From contig NW_027361737.1 of NCBI RefSeq assembly GCF_039654945.1, positions 13,020,001 through 13,084,000 of the forward strand: DNA of 64,000 bases. Direction: 5' to 3'. The DNA is from Dendrobates tinctorius. Taxonomy: Eukaryota. The notes beneath the pieces are model-generated. The model did no database searches and was not told the origin of the DNA. It saw only the letters and a list, made by a program, of their open reading frames with translations. Below, in pieces: positions 3,977 to 43,929 of this stretch; position 1 is the stretch's first letter, and the number at the start of each line of letters is the position of its first letter. Both the position numbers and the translations under genes were made by a program.

Positions 3977-5371
3977 ATGGCACAGCTAAAGCTCCACCAT
4001 GGCGGCACAGCCAGAAGTGGATTCAGTGGTGGAAATAATCCCTACGCCCGAGACGGTATCTCTCGTTCCACATGGGGGGTGAGTGATCTCCGTGAGCTCC
4101 CGCTCGCTAATATGCGATTATTAACTTTTTCTTTTCAGGGGCGCAAGTGCACAGCAAAATCCAAGCACATGGTATGTGCTATATGCACGGAGGAGCTGCC
4201 CCCCTACATGGCAGAAAAAGCTCTGTGCGGCGTGCATAGAGCAGACGATACGGGAGGAATCCCCGAGGTTTGCTTCAGACCTCCAAACACTGATAAGGAC
4301 CCAGGTAGAGGACGCCCTCAAGGGCGTTAGAACCACTAAGAAAAAACATAGATCCAGGCATAGATCTCCAGAGTCCAGTATTAGTGAGTCAGGGAGTGAA
4401 TCATCTAACTCGAGTTATTCATCATCCTCCCAGTCATCATCATCATCCTCAGAAGGGGGACGCAGCTGCTTCCCTATTGAGGAGGCGGATGCACTGGTAA
4501 AAGCCGTGAGGACAACTATGGGGCTGGTAGATGAACGCCCTAAAAAAACGGCGGAAGAGTTAATGTTCAGTGGACTGGAACAAAAAAAAGGAGAGTTTTC
4601 CCAGTGAATGAGAAAATCCACTCTCTAATCAAACGAGAATGGAAAAAGCCAGACAAAGCCCTCCTAACACCCAAGAGGAAATACCCTTTTGATGATCCGG
4701 CCTGCTCCCTATGGAGTAAAGCACCTAAACTGGATGTGGCGGTTGCAAAGGCTTCTAAAAAATTTGCCCTGCCCTTCAAAGATATGGGTACCCTGAAGGA
4801 CCCAATGGATAAACAGGCAGAAAACTTTTTGAAAAACGCTTGGGAAGCGGCAGGAGGGGGACTAAAGCCAGCCATAGCAGCCACATGCACGGCACGTGCC
4901 TTAATGATTTGGTTAGACCACTTAGATTCCCAAATAAAAGAAAAAGTCCCAAGGGAAACAATACAAAGGTCAGTTTCTGTAATGAAGGGAGTAGCAGCCT
5001 TCCTGGCGGATGCGTCAGTAGACTCAACTAGGTTGGCGGCCAGAGCAGCCTCCTTCTCAAATGCCGCGAGACGCGCCTTATGGCTAAAATGCTGGCCAGG
5101 GGATCTGCAGACTAAAACCAAATTGTGCGCAATCCCATGTGAGGGAGAGTTCTTATTTGGCCCAACGTTAGACGACATCTTGGAGAAGGCGGGGGACAAG
5201 AAAAAAATCCTTTCCCAGTTTCCCTAATCAGGCATACACACGGCCTTTTCAGAACAGAAGATTTATGCGGCGAAGACCCCCAAAAGGGAACAGAGAAGGT
5301 TGGGAGGATAAAAGAAATAAGAACAAAGGCTTTCAGTTCAACAAGCCCACCGATAACAAAAAGCCACAATG
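3977..5371 (+). pseudogene. DIRS ORF1 (gag-like; Cys-rich N-terminus, Ser-rich linker), frameshifted
   Basis: ORF pieces 3977-4330 (CAIC), 4176-4607 (LCAAC, Ser-rich) and 4604-5227 (PKLDVAV..LKDPMDK..ARRALWLKCW..GEFLFG) lie upstream of RT, as in vertebrate DIRS ORF1. Confidence 0.75.
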
Positions 5372-5397: not shown

Positions 5398-7250
5398 TTG
5401 TCCTACTTCTTCCAGGCCTGGGAAAAAATATCCGCGAGCCCGTGGATTCTGAACATAATAAAAGAAGGACTGAGACTAAAATTCAATACCCTCCCCAACC
5501 ATTTTTTTGTGATAATGCCCCAAAGGACATCACACGAGCAGCTGGCTCTGCAACAAGAGGTCGCGAACCTAAGGGAAAAGGGGTACTACAAGAAGTCCCC
5601 TACCAGGACAGAGGCAAAGGCTTCTACTCCCCTCTCTTTCTCCGCAGAAAGCCAGACAGAACATACAGGGCCATAATAAATCTAAAGAGACTGAACAAGT
5701 TCCTGGAAATTCAGCGTTTCAAGATGGAAATAATAAAATCTTGTGTAAAATTGCTTCCCCCATCATGCTTCATGGCTGTATTAGACCTGAGAGATGCATA
5801 CTACCATGTACCTATTCACAGAGACCACAGGAAATACCTCAGGGTGGCGGTGACAATCCAGGGGGAGATAAAACATTATCAGTTCAAAGCTCTCCCCTTC
5901 GGGCTAGCTATTGCCCCAAGAGTATTTACAAAGATAATGTCGGAAGTAATGGCCCACATAAGAGAGCAAAACATCCTGATAGTCCCATACCTGGACGATC
6001 TCTTGGTAGTAGGCGTCACCTTTCACCACTGTGAAACAGTTGGACATGGTCATGGGATCTCTAGTGAATCTAGGATGGATGCTGAATTTGCCCAAATCCA
6101 GACTCGTACCAAGTCAGGTACAGGAATACTTGGGAATAATACTGGGCTCAACCGAACAAAAATGTTATCTTCCACAGGCGAAGATTCAAAAGATGACACA
6201 GATGGTGTCACAAATGATAGCTTCCCCAGTAACTACCCTGAGAAAGGCAATGTCTCTATTGGGGTCAATGACAGCCTGCATGCCTGCAGTACAGTGGGCA
6301 CAAAGCCACACGCGAGTCTTACAGTGGGAAATATTAGACGCAGACGTTTCCCTTAATGGGAATTTAGACAGGTGGTTAAACATCACACCAAACACAATAC
6401 ACTCCTTAGCATGGTGGACAGACCCAGCCAATCTAACCAAAGGGGTCCCTTGGGCGTTACCAACAACAAAAATCTTAACCACAGATGCAAGCCCCTGGGG
6501 GTGGGGTGCACATCTAGACAGCCAGGTAGCTCAAGGGCCCTGGGCTCAAAAAAGAGTCAGTTTCCTCAAACATGAAGGAGCTGCTGGCAGTGAAACTAGC
6601 TCTCGTTCATTTTCTAGACTCGCTTCGCTCCCAACACACAAGGGTCTTCTCAGACAACCGGGTAGTGGTAGCATATCTACACCACCAGGGGGCACCAGGT
6701 CTCGAGCACTGATGGAAGTAACAAAATCCATCTTTCACCTAGCGGAGCACAATCTGGAATCCCTGACAGCCCTCCACATAAAAGGGTCGGAAAACCGAAC
6801 AGCAGACTTCTTGAGCAGAACACGCCTAAAGCAGGCGGAGTGGGAACTAAGCCAGTCAGTCTTCAACCAGATTGTGAACCTCTGGGGCCGGCCAGAAATA
6901 GACTTATTTGCAAACAGTCAGAACCGGAAATTGGAAACCTTCTGCTCAATAGATCCCCGGGGGGTCCCAGTAGCTCTAGATGCCTTCACGGTTCCCTGGG
7001 ATTATCATCTGGCTTACGCTTTTCCTCCAATATCGCTCATCCCCTTAGTACTGAGGAAAATACGGGGGGGACAAAGCGACGGTAGTAGTAATAGCGCCCT
7101 TCTGGCCCTGGAGAATATGGTTCCCCTGGCTGAGAAAAATGTCTGTCACAGACCCTTGGGTTCTACCAGAAACCCCGGACCTTCTATCCCAGGGACCAGT
7201 GTATCACCCCCATATAAAAAACCTACACATGACAGCTTGGCTTTTGAGAG
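5398..7250 (+). pseudogene. DIRS reverse transcriptase / RNase H / dam-like methyltransferase, frameshifted
   Basis: LDLRDAYYHVPI, LPFGLAIAPRVF and PYLDDLL (RT); TTDASPWGWG and HIKGSENRTADFLS (RNase H); IDLFAN and YAFPP (MT-like). Confidence 0.9.
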
Positions 7251-8265
7251 GGAACTCCTAAGCAATAGGGGCTTCTCGTCAAACTTGATAACCACGTTAC
7301 TACAAAGTAGAAAGCCAGTAACCACTATGGCATATGGGAAGGTGTGGAAAAAATTCCTATCAATTTCAGATTCTGACCCAACGGGAGAGATCCCAATAGG
7401 GGAAATTCTGGAATTCCTACAGAAAGGGTTGGAAAAGGGACTAGCTACAAGCACCCTGAAAGTACAGGTGGCGGCCTTAGGGGCTTTGTATAATCATGAC
7501 TTAGCTGGAAATCGGTGGGTTAGGAGATTCATGAGGGCCGCAAGTAGATCTAGGCCGATCCCCCTACGTACCACCCCCCTTTGGGCTCTAAACCTGGTAT
7601 TGAACGCACTAACCAAATCTCCCTTCGAACCCTTGGCGGAGGCTCCCTTAAAAATATTGTCCCTTAAGACCTGCCTCCTCATAACCTTAACTTCTGCCCG
7701 CCGCATTAGTGATATACAAGCCTTGTCTGCCCACTCACCCTTCACGCAAGTTCTGGATGATAGGGTAATTCTTAGAACTGACCCAGCATATCTCCCCAAG
7801 GTGTCTTCACAGTTTCATAGGACCCTAGAAATCTCCCTACCCTCCTTCTGTCCTAATCCCAAAAACAAAACAGAAGAGGTATGGCACACTTTAGATGTAA
7901 AAAGATGCCTGGTCCAGTATATAACAACCACAAGGGAGTTTAGGAAGGATAGGGCTCTGTTTGTCTGTTTTCAGGGTCCTCGGAAGGGTCAAAAAGCATC
8001 GAAGGCCACGCTGGCGAGGTGGATAAGAGAAGCCATCACCCTATCCTACTCCTCCTGCGGGGCAGCCATCCCAGAGGACATAAGGACCCATTCAACCAGG
8101 GCAGCATCCTGGGGGGAGAAAGCCGGCGCTTCAATAGACCAGATATGTAAAGCCGCCACTTAGTCTTCCCCCTCTACATTTTTCAAACATTACCATCTAG
8201 ACTTGACCTCCTCTTCAGATCTCACCTTTGGGAAAAGGGTTCTGGAGGCGGTGGTCCCTCCCTAG
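7250..8265 (+). pseudogene. DIRS tyrosine recombinase, premature stop at 8161
   Basis: SARRISDIQAL, HTLDVKR, HSTRAASW and, after the in-frame TAG, TFFKHYHLD (catalytic Tyr region). Confidence 0.88.
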
Positions 8266-10544: not shown

Positions 10545-10684
10545 NNNNNNNNNNNNNNNNNNNNNNNNNNNNNNNNNNNNNNNNNNNNNNNNNNNNNNNN
10601 NNNNNNNNNNNNNNNNNNNNNNNNNNNNNNNNNNNNNNNNNNNNNNNNNNNNNNNNNNNNNNNNNNNNNNNNNNNNNNNNNNNN
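10545..10684. other. Assembly gap (140 N)
   Basis: Run of n characters. Confidence 1.
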
Positions 10685-14023: not shown

Positions 14024-15381
14024 GTGTGTGTATATACAGTGTATATATATAATATTTACACACATGCAGGTGCTTCTCACAAAATTAGAATCTCATCAAA
14101 AAGTTAATTGTTCTGTCCCCACATGAGGCGAATGGAGGTGTAGTTGATTGGGGCTGGGAGAGATTCCTACCTTCCATTTCCTCAATGCAGAGCAGACAGG
14201 ACCTTTGTTGCTGTTCATGCATCCGGAGAGATGATACAAACCAGATATTGTGAAGTCCAGACTTGTTTATTGGAAATCTGGACGTACAGCATATGATTGG
14301 TAATGCAGTACTTCTCCAGAAATGCAGGTGTAACGACCAAGGTGGTACAGCAATGGGTGTGCAGCAAGTTGGTAGCAAGATGATTCAGCAAACTGTGGTA
14401 AAAAAAGCTGATGCCTTTCACAGCCTGGTAAGTGTGTCTCTCCCAGGAGAAAATGAAACTAATAATGGCCACCAGCAGGAAGAGAAGGAGTGACTGACCT
14501 GGAAGTGGAAGGCATGTACTAAAATTAATTAGCCGCAGTCTGCTGTACAGAAAAGGACCAGCAGGTGGCAGCAGACAAAATGCAAGACTGTACACAAAGA
14601 ATGTGTTATGTGACCAATCTATATAAAGCATATAAGAATAACTTTAGCCGGAACAGCACACTCCCCGTCTAAAATTCCGTAAGGGATTTCACTATATTGT
14701 TTTTGTTTTTTGTTTTTTTTTTTTAAATTAAGTTCAATAACCTAGAAAGGAAACACAAATATGCATGCAACAATAACTTCAAAACGAGGTAGATGAGTCA
14801 GTTCCTATGACACTCCAAAGAAAACCCGTCTTCGGATCGGAGAAGCCGCACTAGGCCAAACGGTACCCAACGGTAATCCAATGGACGAAGCACTAGGGCA
14901 GAGTTCTGTTCATGGTTCATCCTACTGGAATGTCCTCAATTGGCAGTATCAATACGAGCTCGTGGATTGGCCTCTGAAATGTCTTAGGCTCGCCTTTCCT
15001 AAGGACCTTCAGCTCCACCTTTCGGACCTTACCGTCTTGTCTAGGGAAAGTCTTTGTAACGATTCCCATAGGCCAGTCGATCCTTCGGGCTTGTTGTTCT
15101 TTCATTAGTACCATGTCTCCTTCTTTCAAGTTCGGTTTATTCTGTCGCCATTTTCTTCTTCCTTGGAGAGTCACAAGATATTACTTTCTCCACTGGCTCC
15201 AGAAGTAGCCAGCGAGGTACTGCACACGTTTCCACTGTTTCTGGTAGGTGTTTGCGTGAGTAAACTCTCCACTAACTGTTAGCTGGTTCCCGGTCTTTTG
15301 GGTGAGAAGAGTAGCTGGCGTAAGAATGGTCGGTTTTTCGGGTTCCATGGACACTGGGACAAGTGGTCTTGAGTTGATTAT

Positions 15382-17541
15382 AAAAAGAGAAAAGAGCCAG
15401 CACTGCCAGTGGTCAGAACGCATAACATGAGGTGCATATGCACATATCTTACTGCATTCAAAATGAGACATTTAGCAAAATATTGATCAATATATTGAGC
15501 CACCCCGCCACGCCAAGGCAATCTCATATGGGGGGTCCTACTCTACATTTGTATTTATTCACTGTGCCATTGCGGCCTCCTAAATGTTTTAAAAGCAAGA
15601 CCATATCAAATGCAATCCATACCTGAAGCATGACTGCATCACTCCCGTGCAGCCAGATGGAGCAGGTGCAGATGAAGGCCAACCAGGTCTGAACACAGAC
15701 ATCTCAGGTTTGACCTCCACACACTGCCTGACCAGCAAACACAGATGAAGGGCAATTGCAGGCTCAGACATGGATGCAAAAATAAATAAAGCCTGGGGCA
15801 GGGCGGGGCTGCCGTGAGTGTGCACAGCAGCCTAGATCAATCACAATAAACACAGAAAAGATGGCGAACATGACCCAGCGTGCACGGCAACAGTGGTGGT
15901 CAGCCACAAAACCAATTTGCAATAAAAAGAGAAAAGAGCCAGCACTGCCAGTGGTCAGAACGCATAACATGAGGTGCATATGCACATATCTTACTGCATT
16001 CAAAATGAGACATTTAGCAAATGATTGATCAATATATTGAGCCACCCCGCCACGCCAAGGCAATCTCATATGGGGGGTCCTACTCTACATTTGTATTTAT
16101 TCACTGTGCCATTGTGGCCTCCTAAATGTTTTAAAAGCAAGACCATATCAAATGCAATCCATACCTGAAGCATGACTGCATCACTCCCGTGCAGCCAGAT
16201 GGAGCAGGTGCAGATGAAGGCCAACCAGGTCTGAACACAGACATCTCAGGTTTGACCTCCACACACTGCCTGACCAGCAAACACAGATGAAGGGCAATTG
16301 CAGGCTCAGTCATGGATGCAAAAATAAATAAAGCCTGGGGCAGGGCGGGGCTGCCGTGAGTGTGCACAGCAGCCTAGATCAATCACAATAAACACAGAAA
16401 AGATGGCGAACATGACCCAGCGTGCACGGCAACAGTGGTGGTCAGCCACAAAACCAATTTGCAATAAAAAGAGAAAAGAGCCAGCACTGCCAGTGGTCAG
16501 AACGCATAACATGAGGTGCATATGCACATATCTTACTGCATTCAAAATGAGACATTTAGCAAAATATTGATCAATATATTGAGCCACCCCGCCACGCCAA
16601 GGCAATCTCATATGGGGGGTCCTACTCTACATTTGTATTTATTCACTGTGCCATTGCGGCCTCCTAAATGTTTTAAAAGCAAGACCATATCAAATGCAAT
16701 CCATACCTGAAGCATGACTGCATCACTCCCGTGCAGCCAGATGGAGCAGGTGCAGATGAAGGCCAACCAGGTCTGAACACAGACATCTCAGGTTTGACCT
16801 CCACACACTGCCTGACCAGCAAACACAGATGAAGGGCAATTGCAGGCTCAGACATGGATGCAAAAATAAATAAAGCCTGGGGCAGGGCGGGGCTGCCGTG
16901 AGTGTGCACAGCAGCCTAGATCAATCACAATAAACACAGAAAAGATGGCGAACATGACCCAGCGTGCACGGCAACAGTGGTGGTCAGCCACAAAACCAAT
17001 TTGCAATAAAAAGAGAAAAGAGCCAGCACTGCCAGTGGTCAGAACGCATAACATGAGGTGCATCTTTTCTGTGTTTATTGTGATTGATCTAGGCTGCTGT
17101 GCACACTCACGGCAGCCCCGCCCTGCCCCAGGCTTTATTTATTTTTGCATCCATGTCTGAGCCTGCATTGCCCTTCATCTGTGTTTGCTGGTCAGGCAGT
17201 GTGTGGAGGTCAAACCTGAGATGTCTGTGTTCAGACCTGGTTGGCCTTCATCTGCACCTGCTCCATCTGGCTGCACGGGAGTGATGCAGTCATGCTTCAG
17301 GTATGGATTGCATTTGATATGGTCTTGCTTTTAAAACATTTAGGAGGCCGCAATGGCACAGTGAATAAATACAAATGTAGAGTAGGACCCCCCATATGAG
17401 ATTGCCTTGGCGTGGCGGGGTGGCTCAATATATTGATCAATATTTTGCTAAATGTCTCATTTTGAATGCAGTAAGATATGTGCATATGCACCTCATGTTA
17501 TGCGTTCTGACCACTGGCAGTGCTGGCTCTTTTCTCTTTTT
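15382..17541. mobile_element. Non-coding retro-insertion: 3.1 tandem 542-bp units plus one inverted unit, 14-15-bp TSD (Penelope/retrozyme-like architecture)
   Basis: Units start at 15382, 15924, 16466 and 17008 (partial); inverted copy at 17061-17541. TSD (t)cttgagttgattat at 15368-15381 and 17542-17555, within the BEL integrase. Copies differ by only a few bases. Confidence 0.9.
17380..17460 (+). ncRNA. Candidate HDV-like (nested double pseudoknot) ribozyme variant; also on the - strand at 15463-15543, 16005-16085 and 16547-16627
   Basis: Element order by eye: P1 ACCCC/GGGGT, P2 ATGAGAT/GTCTCAT, P3 GCC/GGC, 7-nt L3 TTGGCGT, P4 palindrome ATATTGATCAATAT, J4/2 GCTAA. P1 and P1.1 are non-canonical. 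Confidence 0.4.
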
Positions 17542-20246
17542 CTTGAGTTGATTATGGCAGAAACTTCAGTCAGAAGTAACCAAGGTCTCATGCGTAAGCC
17601 TTGAAGAGTTTACGTCCATAAACATAGAGTTCAGGATGTTGCGCGAGATCCCGATCATCCTTTCCCAGGAACCTCCCATGTGAGAACTATGCGGAGGATT
17701 GAAGATCCAGGTGCAACCTCGTTCTGCCAGTTGATCCTGAATTAGCTTGATGTCAGTATCCAGCTCTCGACATGCACCGATGAACTTGCTTCCGCTGTCA
17801 GACCTCAACTGTTTCACCGGTCCTCTGATCGCTAGAAACCGCCAGATCAGGCTGGATGTGTCCATAGGCTCTATTACCTCTATGTGGACGGCACGGACAG
17901 TCTGGTCCCAGGTCTATGTCCTTGAATCCTGCTGCGTGGTCACTTGAATCAAAGGCTCTTATGACAGCCAGGCTGTTTGAAGCAATTTTGTGCAATCTAA
18001 GCTTAGCTTGGTTCAGTATACCTTGGGTCCTCAAGAGTAGATCGATAGCCGCTTCTTCTGTGGGTAGAGATTTTAGTCCATCATCTACATAGAAGTCTTT
18101 CTCTACAAAGTCTCTGGCATCTGTTCCATATTCGGTCTCTCCTTTTTGAGCGGTTCTCTGCAGGCCATAGGTTGCCACTGCTGGGGAAGGGCTGTTCCCG
18201 AATACGTGCACTCTCATGCGATACTCCACCATCTCTCTGCTGGGGTCATTGTCCTTGTACCATAGGAACCTGAGGAAATTCCTGTGGTCTTCTCTGACTA
18301 TGAAACAGTGGAACATCTGTTCAATGTCGGCAGTGATGGCGATGGGCTCTTTCCGGAACCTCATCAACACTCCTACTAGGTTGTTTGTAAGGTTAGGACC
18401 CGTGAGGAGGACATCGTTGAGAGATACACCTTGATGTTTGGTGCTTGAATCAAAGACCACTCTAATTTGCTTAGGTTTACGTGGGTGATATACTCCGAAT
18501 GAGGGTAGGTACCAGCACTCCTCATTTTCCTTTAAGGGAGGCGCTGGCTCCGCATGGTAATTCCGGAATATCTTGCTCATAAAGGTGACAATGGGTTCTT
18601 TTGTCTCCGGTTTGTTGCTAAGTGTGCGCTGGAGAGAGTTAAATCTGGACAAGGCTTGTTCATGATTGTTCGGGAGTCTTACCCTGGTAGCTCAGAAGGG
18701 TAGGTGCCTTAGGTGTGGTTGGTGGAACGCAGCTTCTGGGGTAGGGATCTCATCCCTTTGGTCGGGTATTTGATCGCATTCGATTAGCATAGGTAAAGGT
18801 ATTTCTACGCCTCCGCTGACAGGAGAAGCAATGAAACCTTGTGCCCTTCTGCCGCTAGTCTCTATGCGGCCTGAGCAAGTGTTCAGATTATATGGCGTTG
18901 CTGGTCCCTTGATTCCAAAGGCTTCAAAGAACTTAGGTCCAGCTAGGGATCGATTGCTCTGATTGCCAATGATAGCCTACATTTTTACTGCCTTCTCTGG
19001 TTGCCCTTCTGGATAAACTCTGATTAGGCATATCCGGGCACAGCATTTATCACTTTGGCTCTCCCCACATACCTCTGAGCAGGAGACAGCTGTGGTAGAC
19101 TTGGCGTTATTCTGTGGCTCCCCGCCATGGCTTGTAGCTGGACTAGAGGTAAATGCGACTGCTGGATCACTGGTGGCCGAGGTTGGATGCAAAGCTGATG
19201 GGTGTATGACACTCTTTACACTTAATGGCAGATTTACAGTCCTTGGTCATGTGTTCTAATGAGGCGCAGCACTTGAAACATACCCCAAGTTCGCTGAGGA
19301 TTTTCTTGCGCTCCTTCATGGTTTTGGACCTGAAGCCTCTACTTTTGTTCAATGAGTGTGGTTTTTTGTGAATGGGACACTCACGATTGAAAGACTTATC
19401 TCTCGATTGAATAGTGTACTGTTTATCGGCAGTTACTGCAGGTGGTGGCAGGTTAGTCTTTCTGACACTTATACTGCTCCTCAAGTCCTTGTGTCTTTGT
19501 GAGACGCTTTCATACCTAGATGACGGTGTTGCTGGAGCTGTAGTGTTAGACTCCAGGAAGTCTAGGCTAGGGTCGTTCCTCATTTGGGCCTGTTCGTCGA
19601 CAAACTTGCAGAACTCATTGAACGGAGGAAAGGTGACATCATGTGATCTTTTGTACCTGGAAACGCATACTGCCCTCTTCTCTTGCAGACTATGTGGCAG
19701 CTTTGAGACGATTGGGTTCACCCCATGGGCAGTGTCAGGTAGCATAATCCAGACAGATGAGGGTCACATAACACAATCTATATAAAGCATATAAGAATAA
19801 CTTTAGACGGAACAGCACATTAATTTATTTCAGTTCTTCAATACAAAAAAATGAAACTCCTATAGAGTCATTACAAACAGTGCTCTGATTCAAGTGTTTA
19901 TTTCTGTTAATGTTGATGATTATGGCTTACGGCCAATGAAAACCCAAAAGCCATTATCTCAGTAAATTAGAAAACTTTATAACACCACCTTGAAAAATGA
20001 TTTTTAAATCCAAAATGTTGGCCTAGTGAAATGTATGTTCAGTAAATGCACTCAATACTCGGTTGGGGCTCCTTTTGCATCAATTACTACATCAATGCGG
20101 CGTGGCATGGAGGGGATCAGCCTGTGGCACTGCTGAGGTGTTATGGAAGCCCAGATTGCTTTGATAGCAGCCTGCAGATCGTCTGCATTGCTGTGTCTGG
20201 TATCTCTCATCTTCCTCTTGACAATACCCCATAGGTATGGGGTTAA

Positions 20247-40339: not shown

Positions 40340-42244
40340 TCAACTGGGGACCAATGATCCTATGTCGGTTGGAAAACCGCTGGGCCTTTTCCTGGGAGAG
40401 AGAGAACTTATCCACCACTTGGTCCCAGATCTGGTGCATTCTCTCCACCACAGTGTCAACACCTGGGCAGGCAGAGGGCTCCACCTGCCCTGAAGAAAAT
40501 CGAGGATGAAACCCAAAGTTACAAAAAAAGGTGACATCAAAGTGGCAGAACTAGCTCTATTATTCAAAGCAAATTCGGCCAAGGTCAAAAATGAAACCCA
40601 ATCATCCTGATCAGCAGAAATAAAACATCTCAAATATGACTCCAAGGTCTGGTTTGTTCTCTCTGTCTGCCCATTGGTCTGAGGGTGAAAAGCAGAGGAG
40701 AAGGACAACTGAATTCCCAGCTTGGAACAGAAAGTTCTCCAAAATCTAGACACAAACTGGACTCCTCTGTCAGAAACAATGTTCTCAGGAATCCCGTGCA
40801 AGCGAGCCACCTGTTGTAAAAACAGGGGCACCAACTCAGAGGAAGACGGCAACTTAGGGAGTGGTACAAGATGAACCATCTTAGAGAACCTATCACAAAT
40901 CACCCAAATAACAGTCATCCTTTGAGAGACAGGCATATCCGAGATGAAATCCATTGAAATACGGGTCCATGGCCTCTTGGGGACAGGCAAAGGCATCAAC
41001 AACCCACTAGAGCGAGAACACGATTTAGACCGGGAGCACGTCCCACAGGACTGCACAAAATTCCTGACATCACGAGACAAGGAGGGCCACCAAAAAGACC
41101 GACTCACCAGATCTCTAGTACCAAAAATACCTGGATGACCAGCCAAAGCAGAGCAATGAACTTCAGACATCACTCTCTTCTTCCACTGGTCAGGAACATA
41201 CAACTTTCCACTGGGACAACGCTCAGGTTTGTCCTCCTGGAACACTTCCAGAGCACGTCTCAAATCGGGCGAGATGGCAGAAAGAACTACCCCTTCGCCT
41301 AAGATGGTAGCAGGCTTGGTCACCACAGGAGAATCAGCAAAGAAGCTCCAAGAGAGGGCGTCTGCCTTGACATTCTTAGTGCCCGGAAGAAAAGAAACCA
41401 CAAAATCAAAACGTGTAAAAAACAAGGCCCACCTAGCCTGTCTAGGGTTCAAGCGCTTAGCCGACTCTAGGTAAATCAAATTCTTGTGGTCAGTGAGGAC
41501 CACGACTTGATGCTTAGCTCCCTCCAACCAATGTCTCCACTCCTCAAATGCCCATTTCATGGCCAACAGTTGCCGATTCCCCACATCATAGTTACGTTCA
41601 GATGGAGAGCACTTTCGGGAAAAGAAAGCACAGGGATTCATTTTAGATGTTACAGGATCCTTTTGGGACAAAACAGCTCCTGCACCAATCTCCGAAGCAT
41701 CCACCTCTACCTGGAACGGAAGTGAGACATCAGGTTGCCGCAAAACCGGGGTGGAGGTGAATCTTCGCTTCAGCTCCTGAAAGGAAGAAACAGCCTCCGG
41801 AGACCAATTTAACACATCAGCACCCTTCTTAGTCAAATCAGTCAATGGCTTGGCAATACTAGAAAATTTTGCTATAAATTTTCGATAAAAATTAGCAAAA
41901 CCCAAAAACTTCTGGAGGGCCTTCAAAGAAGTGGGCTGAACCCAATCGTAAATGGCCTGTACCTTGGCCGGGTCCATTTCAATATTTGACGGGGACAAAA
42001 TAAATCCCAAAAAAGAAATCCTCTGTACTCCAAAAAGGCATTTAGATCCTTTAACATACAGGGAATTCTCCCTCAAGATCCAGAACACAGTCCGAATATG
42101 TTCCACATGAGAATCCCAATCCTTGGAGAAGATCAAAATATCATCCAGATAGATAATCAAAAATTTATCGACAAAATCTCGGAAAATATCGTTCATGAAG
42201 CACTGGAAGACAGAAGGGGCATCAGTGAGCCCAAAAGGCATCAC
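40340..42244 (-). pseudogene. Chromovirus pol (RT-RNase H-integrase), interrupted on both sides
   Basis: MPFGLTDAP, YLDDILI, VDASEIGAGAVL and the integrase core. Confidence 0.9.
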
Positions 42245-42474
42245 CAGGTACTCAAAATGTCCCTCCGGAGTATTAAACGCCGTCTTCCATTCATCCCCAT
42301 GCTTAATGCGAATAAGATTATACGCCCCCCTGAGGTCAAGCTTGGTAAACCAGCAAGCACCTTTAACTCTGGAGAATGGATCCGAAATCAGGGGTAACGG
42401 ATACTGATATTTTACAGTAATTTTGTTGAGGGCACGATAATCAATACAAGGTCTTAATTATCCATCCTTTTTGG

Positions 42475-43929
42475 CTACAAAAAAAAAAAGGCACCTAAGG
42501 TTGACGAGGATGGTCTAATATGACCCTTCTCCAACGCCTCCTTAATATAGGATCGCATAGCCTCGTGCTCGGGTACAGATAGATTGAAGAGCCGACCCTT
42601 GGGAAATTTACACCCCGGGCTCAGTTCAATTGCACAGTCATACCTCCTATGAGGAGGCAGAGACGCAGACTCATTCTCACTAAATACATCATAAAAGTCC
42701 GCCAAATAATCAGGAACATCATGTGACTGAGGAGAGGTGGAAAACACCGGAGCCTCACTAAAGGCACACCGACAACCCCAACTCACCACAGACACAGATT
42801 TCCAATCCAAAACTGGATTATGAATTTGTAACCAGGGAAACCCCAGAACAATAGTATCATGCAGATTATGCAACACCAAAAATCTGCAATTTTCTTGATG
42901 GTCTGGGGCGACCCACATTACCACCTGGGTCCAAAACTGAGGTTTATTTTTAGCCAAAGGAGTAGCATCAATCCCCCTCAAAGGGATAGGCGTCTGCAGA
43001 GGTGTCATCGGAAATCCACAACGTTTAGCAAAATCCAAGTCCATTAGGTTTAGGGCTGCTCCCGAATCCACAAAAGCCTTGGCGGAAAATGTGGACAGGG
43101 AGCAGATCAGAGTAATAGCCAGAAGAAACTTAGGTTGAACACCACCAACAGAAAACGTGTGTGCAAAGCGTTTCTCTCGTTTAGGACAGACGGAGATAAT
43201 ATGCGAGGCATCTCCACAGAAAAAACACAACTTATTACGCCTTCTGAACTCCTGTCGCTGCTCTCTGGAAAAAACTCTATCACATTGCATAGGTTCAGAC
43301 ATTTGTTCAACAGGTGGCAACACCTCTCGTGCAGCTTTGCGTTCGCGCAAACGCCGATCAACCTGAATGGCTAATGACCTAGAATCGTCAAGACCAGAGG
43401 GAACCGGAAATCCCACCATAGTATCTTTTACGGCTTCTGACAACCCCTTCCGAAAGAGAGCAGCCAAGGCATTATCATTCCAGGTAGTAAGTACTGCCCA
43501 CTTTCGGAATTTTTGACAGTACAATTCTGCAGGATCACGACCCTGGTTCAATGCCAGCAGGGTCTTTTCAGCCTGATCAATGGCATTAGGTTCGTCATAC
43601 AACAACCCTAAGGCCTGAAAAAATGCGTTCACATTAGTCAGAATAGGATCTTCTGGTTTCAAAGAAAACGCCCAATCCTGGGGATCGCCACGCAGCAAAG
43701 AGATGACCATTTTAACCTGCTGCACGGAGCTCCCTGACGAGTTAGGCTTCAAGGCAAAAAATAATTTACAATTATTTTTGAAATTCAAAAATTTAGACCG
43801 ATCCCCAAAAAATACATCAGGTGTAGGAATCTTTGGTTCAGCAGCATGTGAATGAGCAAGGTAGGCGGAAATTCCCCGCACTTCCGCAGCGAGCTGCTCC
43901 ACACGATCAGACAATTGCTTTATCTCCAT
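42475..43929 (-). CDS. Chromovirus gag-protease (484-aa open segment)
   Basis: ORF track 42475..43929 contains a gag capsid-like region, a zinc knuckle and a DSG protease. Confidence 0.85.
   Translation of the reverse strand: MEIKQLSDRVEQLAAEVRGISAYLAHSHAAEPKIPTPDVFFGDRSKFLNFKNNCKLFFALKPNSSGSSVQQVKMVISLLRGDPQDWAFSLKPEDPILTNVNAFFQALGLLYDEPNAIDQAEKTLLALNQGRDPAELYCQKFRKWAVLTTWNDNALAALFRKGLSEAVKDTMVGFPVPSGLDDSRSLAIQVDRRLRERKAAREVLPPVEQMSEPMQCDRVFSREQRQEFRRRNKLCFFCGDASHIISVCPKREKRFAHTFSVGGVQPKFLLAITLICSLSTFSAKAFVDSGAALNLMDLDFAKRCGFPMTPLQTPIPLRGIDATPLAKNKPQFWTQVVMWVAPDHQENCRFLVLHNLHDTIVLGFPWLQIHNPVLDWKSVSVVSWGCRCAFSEAPVFSTSPQSHDVPDYLADFYDVFSENESASLPPHRRYDCAIELSPGCKFPKGRLFNLSVPEHEAMRSYIKEALEKGHIRPSSSTLGAFFFL

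Follow-up and report, generated by a model that had tools for sequence, protein, structure and literature searches.

A young insertion of tandem and inverted 542-bp units in Dendrobates tinctorius, probably produced by Penelope-type dual-strand priming

Results and Discussion

A 64,000-nucleotide stretch of the Dendrobates tinctorius genome (NCBI RefSeq assembly GCF_039654945.1, contig NW_027361737.1, forward-strand positions 13,020,001 to 13,084,000), referred to here as the window and numbered from its first letter, contains at 15382–17541 an insert of ∼2.2 kb made of non-coding 542-bp tandem units and a flipped partial copy. We consider it probable, at roughly 0.7, that this insert arose in a single recent event, in which a retroelement that is neither coding nor autonomous was copied in trans by the enzyme (reverse transcriptase/endonuclease) that a Penelope-like element (PLE) encodes. 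The insertion is very young and almost without later mutation. The identity of the enzyme as a PLE protein, a multimeric linear template and site-specific initiation of reverse transcription (RT) are what we infer for this event, and mobilisation in trans is proposed because the insert lacks a credible open reading frame (ORF). The mechanism is not new, as it is the already published behaviour of PLEs (Craig et al, PMC8557442; Frangieh et al, 2024, PMC11167929). The element is probably a hammerhead-less, non-autonomous passenger of the PLE type. By definition it is then not a retrozyme, and it is what an already known process would ordinarily yield.

Anatomy and boundaries of the insert

The repeat structure was determined by repeat search and blastn, which were used in place of Tandem Repeats Finder, as the maximum period of the latter (500) is shorter than 542 and it reported nothing on the array. 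Positions within the unit are denoted by u. Three full units lie head to tail at 15382–15923, 15924–16465 and 16466–17007, followed by the initial 56 bp (u1–56) of a fourth unit at 17008–17063, and all of them have their inferred RNA sense on the minus strand. An inverted, 5′-truncated copy of 481 bp (u482 to u1), with its RNA sense on the plus strand, occupies 17061–17541 and overlaps the direct array by the microhomology CAT at 17061–17063. The same arrangement had been described in the initial annotation of this DNA, which was made from the sequence alone. Units 1 and 3 showed no difference in blastn, and all four substitutions are confined to unit 2, a variant that differs at u99, u100, u192 and u387. 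Apart from a single T missing from a TT near u375/376, the inverted copy matches units 1 and 3 exactly. When read in the RNA sense, the locus is laid out as target-site duplication (TSD), inverted 5′-truncated copy, 56-nt partial unit, three full units and TSD.

Both outer ends of the insert fall at u1, the inferred start of RT, which reads AAAAAGAGAAAAGAGCC at the left end and as the complement of this sequence at the right end, where the inverted copy ends in ...GGCTCTTTTCTCTTTTT; the earlier observation that the two ends share one unit position was thus borne out. A TSD surrounds the whole insertion, as had also been noticed before, with the left copy (TCTTGAGTTGATTAT) at 15367–15381 and the right copy at 17541–17555 on the plus strand. 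The two copies are perfect (15/15 identical), and the length of the TSD is 14 or 15 bp since the T at 17541 is shared with the end of the element and is ambiguous. The 3′ end of the left copy would have served as the top-strand primer. Furthermore, host-element paralogues in two other public runs are represented by contigs whose alignment starts exactly at 17541 (records 19 and 29), and the right boundary is therefore fixed independently. No further copy of the unit was found by blastn elsewhere in the window.

Host element and target site

The insertion interrupts a pol reading that is, by its sequence, of the BEL/Pao type. The DUF5641 domain of the host (PF18701; Pfam E = 3e-18) was mapped to 14920–15180 on the minus strand, downstream of the insertion in the reading direction of pol, and the end of the integrase core (rve) to 17569–17865 on the same strand, upstream of the insertion, by a weak Pfam match (E = 0.055) together with the continuity of the reading. 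The element had been placed inside a BEL integrase; the assignment to a BEL/Pao pol stands, whereas the exact site lies between the integrase core and DUF5641. When the insert and one copy of the TSD were deleted, the host pol reading was restored and became continuous (...LLTEVSAIINSRPLVPVS..., minus strand). The host pol is broken by stops and frameshifts, and is therefore older than the insert. No paralogue of the host element was found within the window. The top-strand primer ends in ...GATTAT, and the 60-bp context of the target has an A+T content of 55%.

Coding capacity and searches for known RNAs

The longest ORF of the array encodes 101 aa and lies on the sense strand. No relatives of it were found by a word-indexed search or by an exhaustive HMMER run against 1.84 billion proteins, and the ORF is therefore not a PLE N-terminus. 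Two exact protein look-ups with the ORFs of the unit were also blank, in agreement with the earlier statement that no credible ORF is present. Similarly, no tRNA-like head or part was seen in the unit, Rfam reported no family for the whole window at the gathering threshold, and at E 10 it gave no ribozyme on the array or on a 121-nt region around the candidate motif described below. The hammerhead was searched on both strands of the dimeric unit with core patterns including minimal, one-mismatch and U3-A8 variants, and no CUGANGA or UUGANAA core followed by GAAA was found; the absence of a hammerhead noted previously was thus seen with both Rfam and core patterns. A scan of metagenomes with a 24-mer from the most conserved segment returned no match. 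An Rfam match to MIR408 at 16858–17152 (plus strand; 27 bits against a gathering threshold of 64, E = 7e-4) was rejected as a microRNA gene. The match arises because it spans the inversion junction, which forms a palindrome hairpin with 107-nt inverted arms.

RNA polarity and a model of dual-strand priming

On the left the junction reads ...GATTAT/AAAAAGAG; on the right, followed along the bottom strand, it is ...CTCAAG(A)/AAAAGAG, and both enter the same sequence. Because both junctions continue into the same sequence, the RNA sense would correspond to the minus strand of units 1–3. Of the two strands, the one assigned as RNA sense from the junctions is alone in folding better than its shuffles. 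The minus strand of units 1–3 folds at −188.6 kcal/mol (z = −2.6), with 1 of 100 shuffles as good, as against −148.1 kcal/mol (z = 0.09 versus shuffles) for the opposite strand. When folded as a circle, the RNA-sense strand was 68% paired and took the form of a branched quasi-rod. The RNA would be U-rich at its 3′ end, and RT would start at ...CUCUUUUCUCUUUUU/AUUGC on both strands. The tandem runs on across u1, so the start of RT is internal to the unit array. At their 3′ ends the two cDNAs (...GCAT-3′ and ...GATG-3′) can pair over 3 nt, which explains the position of the inversion junction at CAT.

These features can be accommodated in a single target-primed event. As template, a genomic tandem array of 542-bp units would have supplied a multimeric transcript with the sense given above. 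The enzyme would cut both strands at an AT-containing site in the BEL/Pao pol with a stagger of 14–15 nt, and each target 3′-OH would prime a cDNA at the same internal RNA site. The top-strand cDNA would span 3.1 units, ending with the 56-bp partial unit, and the bottom-strand cDNA 481 nt. The 3′ ends of the two cDNAs would then pair through CAT/ATG, followed by fill-in. The initial annotation had likewise proposed one target-primed event in which both strands were primed at the same U-rich site, and the phase of the ends and the CAT junction support this proposal.

Linear multimer or circle as template

The initial annotation left the template as a circular or a multimeric RNA. The multimeric part of this claim stands; a circular template is unneeded, and the pattern of unit variants counts mildly against a circle. 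The full units follow an A-B-A pattern, in which the four substitutions of unit 2 amount to three events if the adjacent pair is counted once, and units 1 and 3 as well as the 481-bp inverted copy are free of substitutions. If one RNA circle had been copied 3.1 times, the resulting units would be expected to be identical. The chance that later random mutation puts all three events in one of four similar segments is ∼6%. Because the A-B-A pattern is improbable by later mutation, we favour the transcript of a heterogeneous array or a switch of template between RNAs, and the sequence pattern makes a multimeric linear template more likely than a single RNA circle. Rolling-circle copying of a single circular RNA was dropped as the main model, since units 1 and 3 are identical and unit 2 holds all the substitutions.

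The repeat family in public sequencing runs

The abundance of the unit was assessed with the Logan contigs of four public runs (X1, X6, X13 and X17) aligned to 16950–18950, of which X13 and X17 are RNA-labelled and X17 comes from a second organism; depth is given as summed word depth, which is not copy number. The DNA run X1 gave 1,659 contigs at 85–100% identity, which fall into classes of ≥99% (322), 95–99% (510), 90–95% (583) and <90% (244). The summed word depth in X1 was ∼36,600 on the unit versus ∼3,900 on the BEL/Pao flank, a ∼9-fold ratio in which the flank is itself repeated. The corresponding ratios were ∼19 for X6, ∼3 for X13 and ∼1.8 for X17, and the copies in X17 are mostly at 85–95% identity. 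The depth reached its maximum at 17352–17485 (u57–190). These alignments clearly point to a unit family that is abundant, of mixed ages and shared with a related organism. In addition, a 413-nt contig of X13 follows the path u164 to u1 to u542 to u292 with 0–1 mismatches, and thus carries a unit–unit junction in an RNA-labelled library. This contig fits a multimeric or circular RNA, with no enrichment over DNA and with DNA carry-over possible.

Comparison with published PLE insertions and retrozymes

Insertions of PLEs are known to consist of partial tandems with an adjacent inverted 5′-truncated copy, and clades of PLEs without a hammerhead have been described together with passengers that form “multicopy head-to-tail insertions”, such as MRC1/Chlamys in Chlamydomonas (Craig et al, PMC8557442). 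A purified PLE protein cleaves both strands of the target and extends them, RT starts on both strands at one internal RNA site lacking homology with the target, a multi-copy transcript serves as template and hammerhead mutants insert normally (Frangieh et al, 2024, PMC11167929). The locus resembles the PLE passengers in its head-to-tail copies within one TSD, in the adjacent inverted 5′-truncated copy on the RNA-5′ side of the tandem, in being non-coding and in requiring no ribozyme cleavage, and it resembles the PLE reaction in having cDNA on both strands from one internal site of a multimeric RNA (PMC11167929). By analogy with the published PLE scheme, every structural feature of the locus follows from it. 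The Penelope-like style of the insertion and its mobilisation in trans, both suggested earlier, agree with this layout and with the lack of an ORF.

The non-LTR retrozymes of metazoans, where LTR stands for long terminal repeat, are the other group to be compared. Hammerhead-bearing tandem “non-LTR retrozymes” of 51–972 bp were recently reported in 7 of 7 amphibians sampled (Li, Clavereau & Pollet, 2026, bioRxiv 10.64898/2026.07.22.740005), and were argued to derive from the pseudo-LTRs (pLTRs) of PLEs in the same work; most of their families have seven or fewer units (PMC7229834; bioRxiv 10.64898/2026.07.22.740005). These elements, including the amphibian satellite-2-like ones (PMC7229834), are likewise tandem arrays of non-coding units, each a few hundred bp long, with a TSD of >4 bp, a structured RNA and a presumed dependence on PLEs. 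Each of their units carries a type I hammerhead, whereas the 542-bp unit has none on either strand. Abundant circular RNA of unit length is a further hallmark of the retrozymes. The description of the insert as a new retrozyme-like element is not upheld, as no self-cleaving ribozyme could be demonstrated and the family of the unit is abundant, mixed in age and found in a related organism too.

If the reading as a PLE-type passenger is correct, the locus would document, in nature and with unusual clarity, the priming of both strands at one internal RNA site, which for PLEs has so far been shown solely in vitro (PMC11167929). It would also indicate that an abundant vertebrate tandem passenger can lack a hammerhead, and retrozyme surveys based on the hammerhead, such as the 2026 one (bioRxiv 10.64898/2026.07.22.740005), would miss such families. 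A family of the 542-bp type would have gone uncounted in that survey because its detection depends on the hammerhead.

Several observations weigh against a PLE as the copying enzyme. No autonomous PLE with the 3′ module of the unit was identified in the window, which was all that could be searched. A hammerhead in the pLTR is typical of canonical PLE clades and absent in Naiad/Chlamys (PMC8557442); the vertebrate clades known from frogs normally carry it in their repeated part, as do the canonical Neptune and Poseidon in their pLTRs, whereas the 542-bp unit does not. The A+T content of the target is only 55%, where a PLE target would be expected to be AT-rich with an ATT motif. The 30–40-bp “tail”, an optional feature of PLEs, is absent, as both ends lie at u1. 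The enrichment of the unit over the flank is lower in the RNA-labelled runs than in DNA. Finally, no contig among those listed bridges the inversion junction 17063/17064, a point that would also suit an assembly artefact.

A PLE like the fragment at 225–640 of the window had earlier been suggested as the mobilising element. A link to this fragment is not supported: neither the fragment nor the adjoining 225 bp on its downstream side showed similarity to the 542-bp unit in blastn, and Pfam did not confirm the fragment as a PLE. On the minus strand this fragment has a frame with three stops, in which GVIYCIKCPCNKLM, GERRDPYM and ESMNICAIY are each followed by a stop. By eye it is GIY-YIG-like, as in a Penelope-like endonuclease; its pieces were not confirmed by Pfam.

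A candidate HDV-like fold and the retrozyme alternative

The strongest of the competing explanations retains the PLE as the copying enzyme and assigns the 542-nt family to true retrozymes, in which a self-cleaving fold resembling that of hepatitis delta virus (HDV), with a swapped P1.1, replaces the hammerhead. Multimers would be cut into unit-length RNAs, and these 542-nt monomers could circularise and be reverse transcribed by the PLE in a rolling-circle manner. We regard this explanation as unlikely. It starts from a putative fold at 17388–17460 on the plus strand (RNA sense), where the nested P1, P2, P3 and P4 and the J4/2 C of HDV-like ribozymes (HDV, CPEB3, R2, RTE and L1Tc) can be drawn; unproven copies of the motif lie on the minus strand in units 1–3 at 15463–15535, 16005–16077 and 16547–16619. 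The candidate P1 would pair 17388–93 (CCCCCC) with 17417–23 (GGGGUGG), with either a C·U mismatch or a bulged U17421. The putative P2 would pair 17396–17402 (AUGAGAU) with 17454–60 (GUCUCAU) over 7 bp, and the GC-pairing P3 would join 17404–06 (GCC) to 17414–16 (GGC), enclosing the L3 loop UUGGCGU. The P4 hairpin would occupy 17426–47, P1.1 would be a single G–C pair of swapped polarity, and J4/2 would be CUAAAU with its initial C in place. This J4/2 resembles the CUAAG of antigenomic HDV.

The position of the motif is in favour of a ribozyme. It lies on the inferred sense strand, inside the deepest-covered segment of the family (17352–17485) and 153 nt upstream of the start of RT, a spacing that resembles the distance from hammerhead to RT start in the anole PLE (PMC11167929). 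The candidate fold would occupy the place that the hammerhead has in canonical PLEs, ∼150 nt upstream of the RT start. A strict descriptor of the nested fold was matched by only 2 of 400 dinucleotide shuffles (6 of 400 if P2 is allowed to be at least 6 bp); this descriptor was designed after the motif had been seen, and a loose one is common in shuffles, with matches in 168 of 300 (56%).

The details of the fold fit an HDV-like ribozyme less well. The known members have a continuous P1 of 6–7 bp, whereas the candidate has an interruption in P1, the helix by which the cleavage site is positioned, and no ungapped P1 with 6 of 7 pairs exists. Its P1.1 is one swapped pair, and no covariance model of the HDV family in Rfam matches it, even at E 10 on the 121 nt. 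The changes at u99 and u100 in unit 2 disrupt two pairs of P4 without compensation. In the global fold, the G-rich strand at 17404–17423 (GCCUUGGCGUGGCGGGGUGG) pairs with a C-rich segment (CCCCGCCCUGCCCCAGGC) at RNA-sense positions 118–133, ∼290 nt away, in a helix of ∼16 bp, and it is possible that this distant helix is an alternative conformation of the modelled candidate. Furthermore, none of the insertion ends and cDNA stops coincides with the predicted cut, and the A-B-A heterogeneity speaks against a single circle. On this modelling, a working or recently working ribozyme seems doubtful. If the HDV-like fold were active, it would mean that the ribozyme module of PLE-mobilised elements is exchangeable.

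LINE-mediated and DNA-level alternatives

Retroposition of a read-through transcript of a 542-bp satellite by a long interspersed nuclear element (LINE), through twin priming of the L1 or L2 type and with no PLE involved, would be decidedly improbable. L1 twin priming, too, is marked by a 15-bp TSD, an inversion and a junction with microhomology, and the locus shares with it the two staggered 3′-OH primers; the family is also abundant enough for a transcribed satellite. Twin priming by L1 differs in involving poly(A) and an arbitrary second start, as its second primer anneals arbitrarily, whereas at this locus both cDNAs begin at the same unit base on a multimeric template. Neither poly(A) nor a microsatellite tail of the LINE type is present, and the RNA is U-rich at its 3′ end.

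The least probable origin, which we hold to be very remote, is one at the DNA level or by artefact (a foldback DNA transposon, a break into which satellite or extrachromosomal circular DNA was captured, or an assembly error of the chimeric fold-back kind), for although the insert has 481-bp terminal inverted repeats made from tandem subunits, like foldback elements, and the inversion junction is unbridged among the contigs listed, the TSD of 14–15 bp is longer than that of any cut-and-paste superfamily known to us, the identical unit phase at both ends is not expected of break capture, the perfect TSD and the restorable host reading frame are not expected of an assembly chimera, and the strand-asymmetric foldability indicates an RNA intermediate.

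Other features in the window

At 40340–43929 on the minus strand lie two long open frames from an LTR retroelement of the Ty3/gypsy type, which looks far less degraded than the BEL/Pao host. The first (484 aa) contains gag and an aspartic protease, and the second (634 aa) contains the end of the reverse transcriptase, RNase H, the integrase zinc domain and the integrase core. At 5442–8163 on the plus strand, an ORF of 304 aa with RVT_1 (E = 2e-15) overlaps one of 710 aa that has no Pfam family. The stretch at 10545–10684 consists of 140 N and is an assembly gap or a masked stretch. An ORF of 207 aa at 4604–5224 on the plus strand carries a LAP2alpha domain (PF11560, E = 2.9e-13) in transposon-rich surroundings, and could be a fragment of a host gene or a captured piece.

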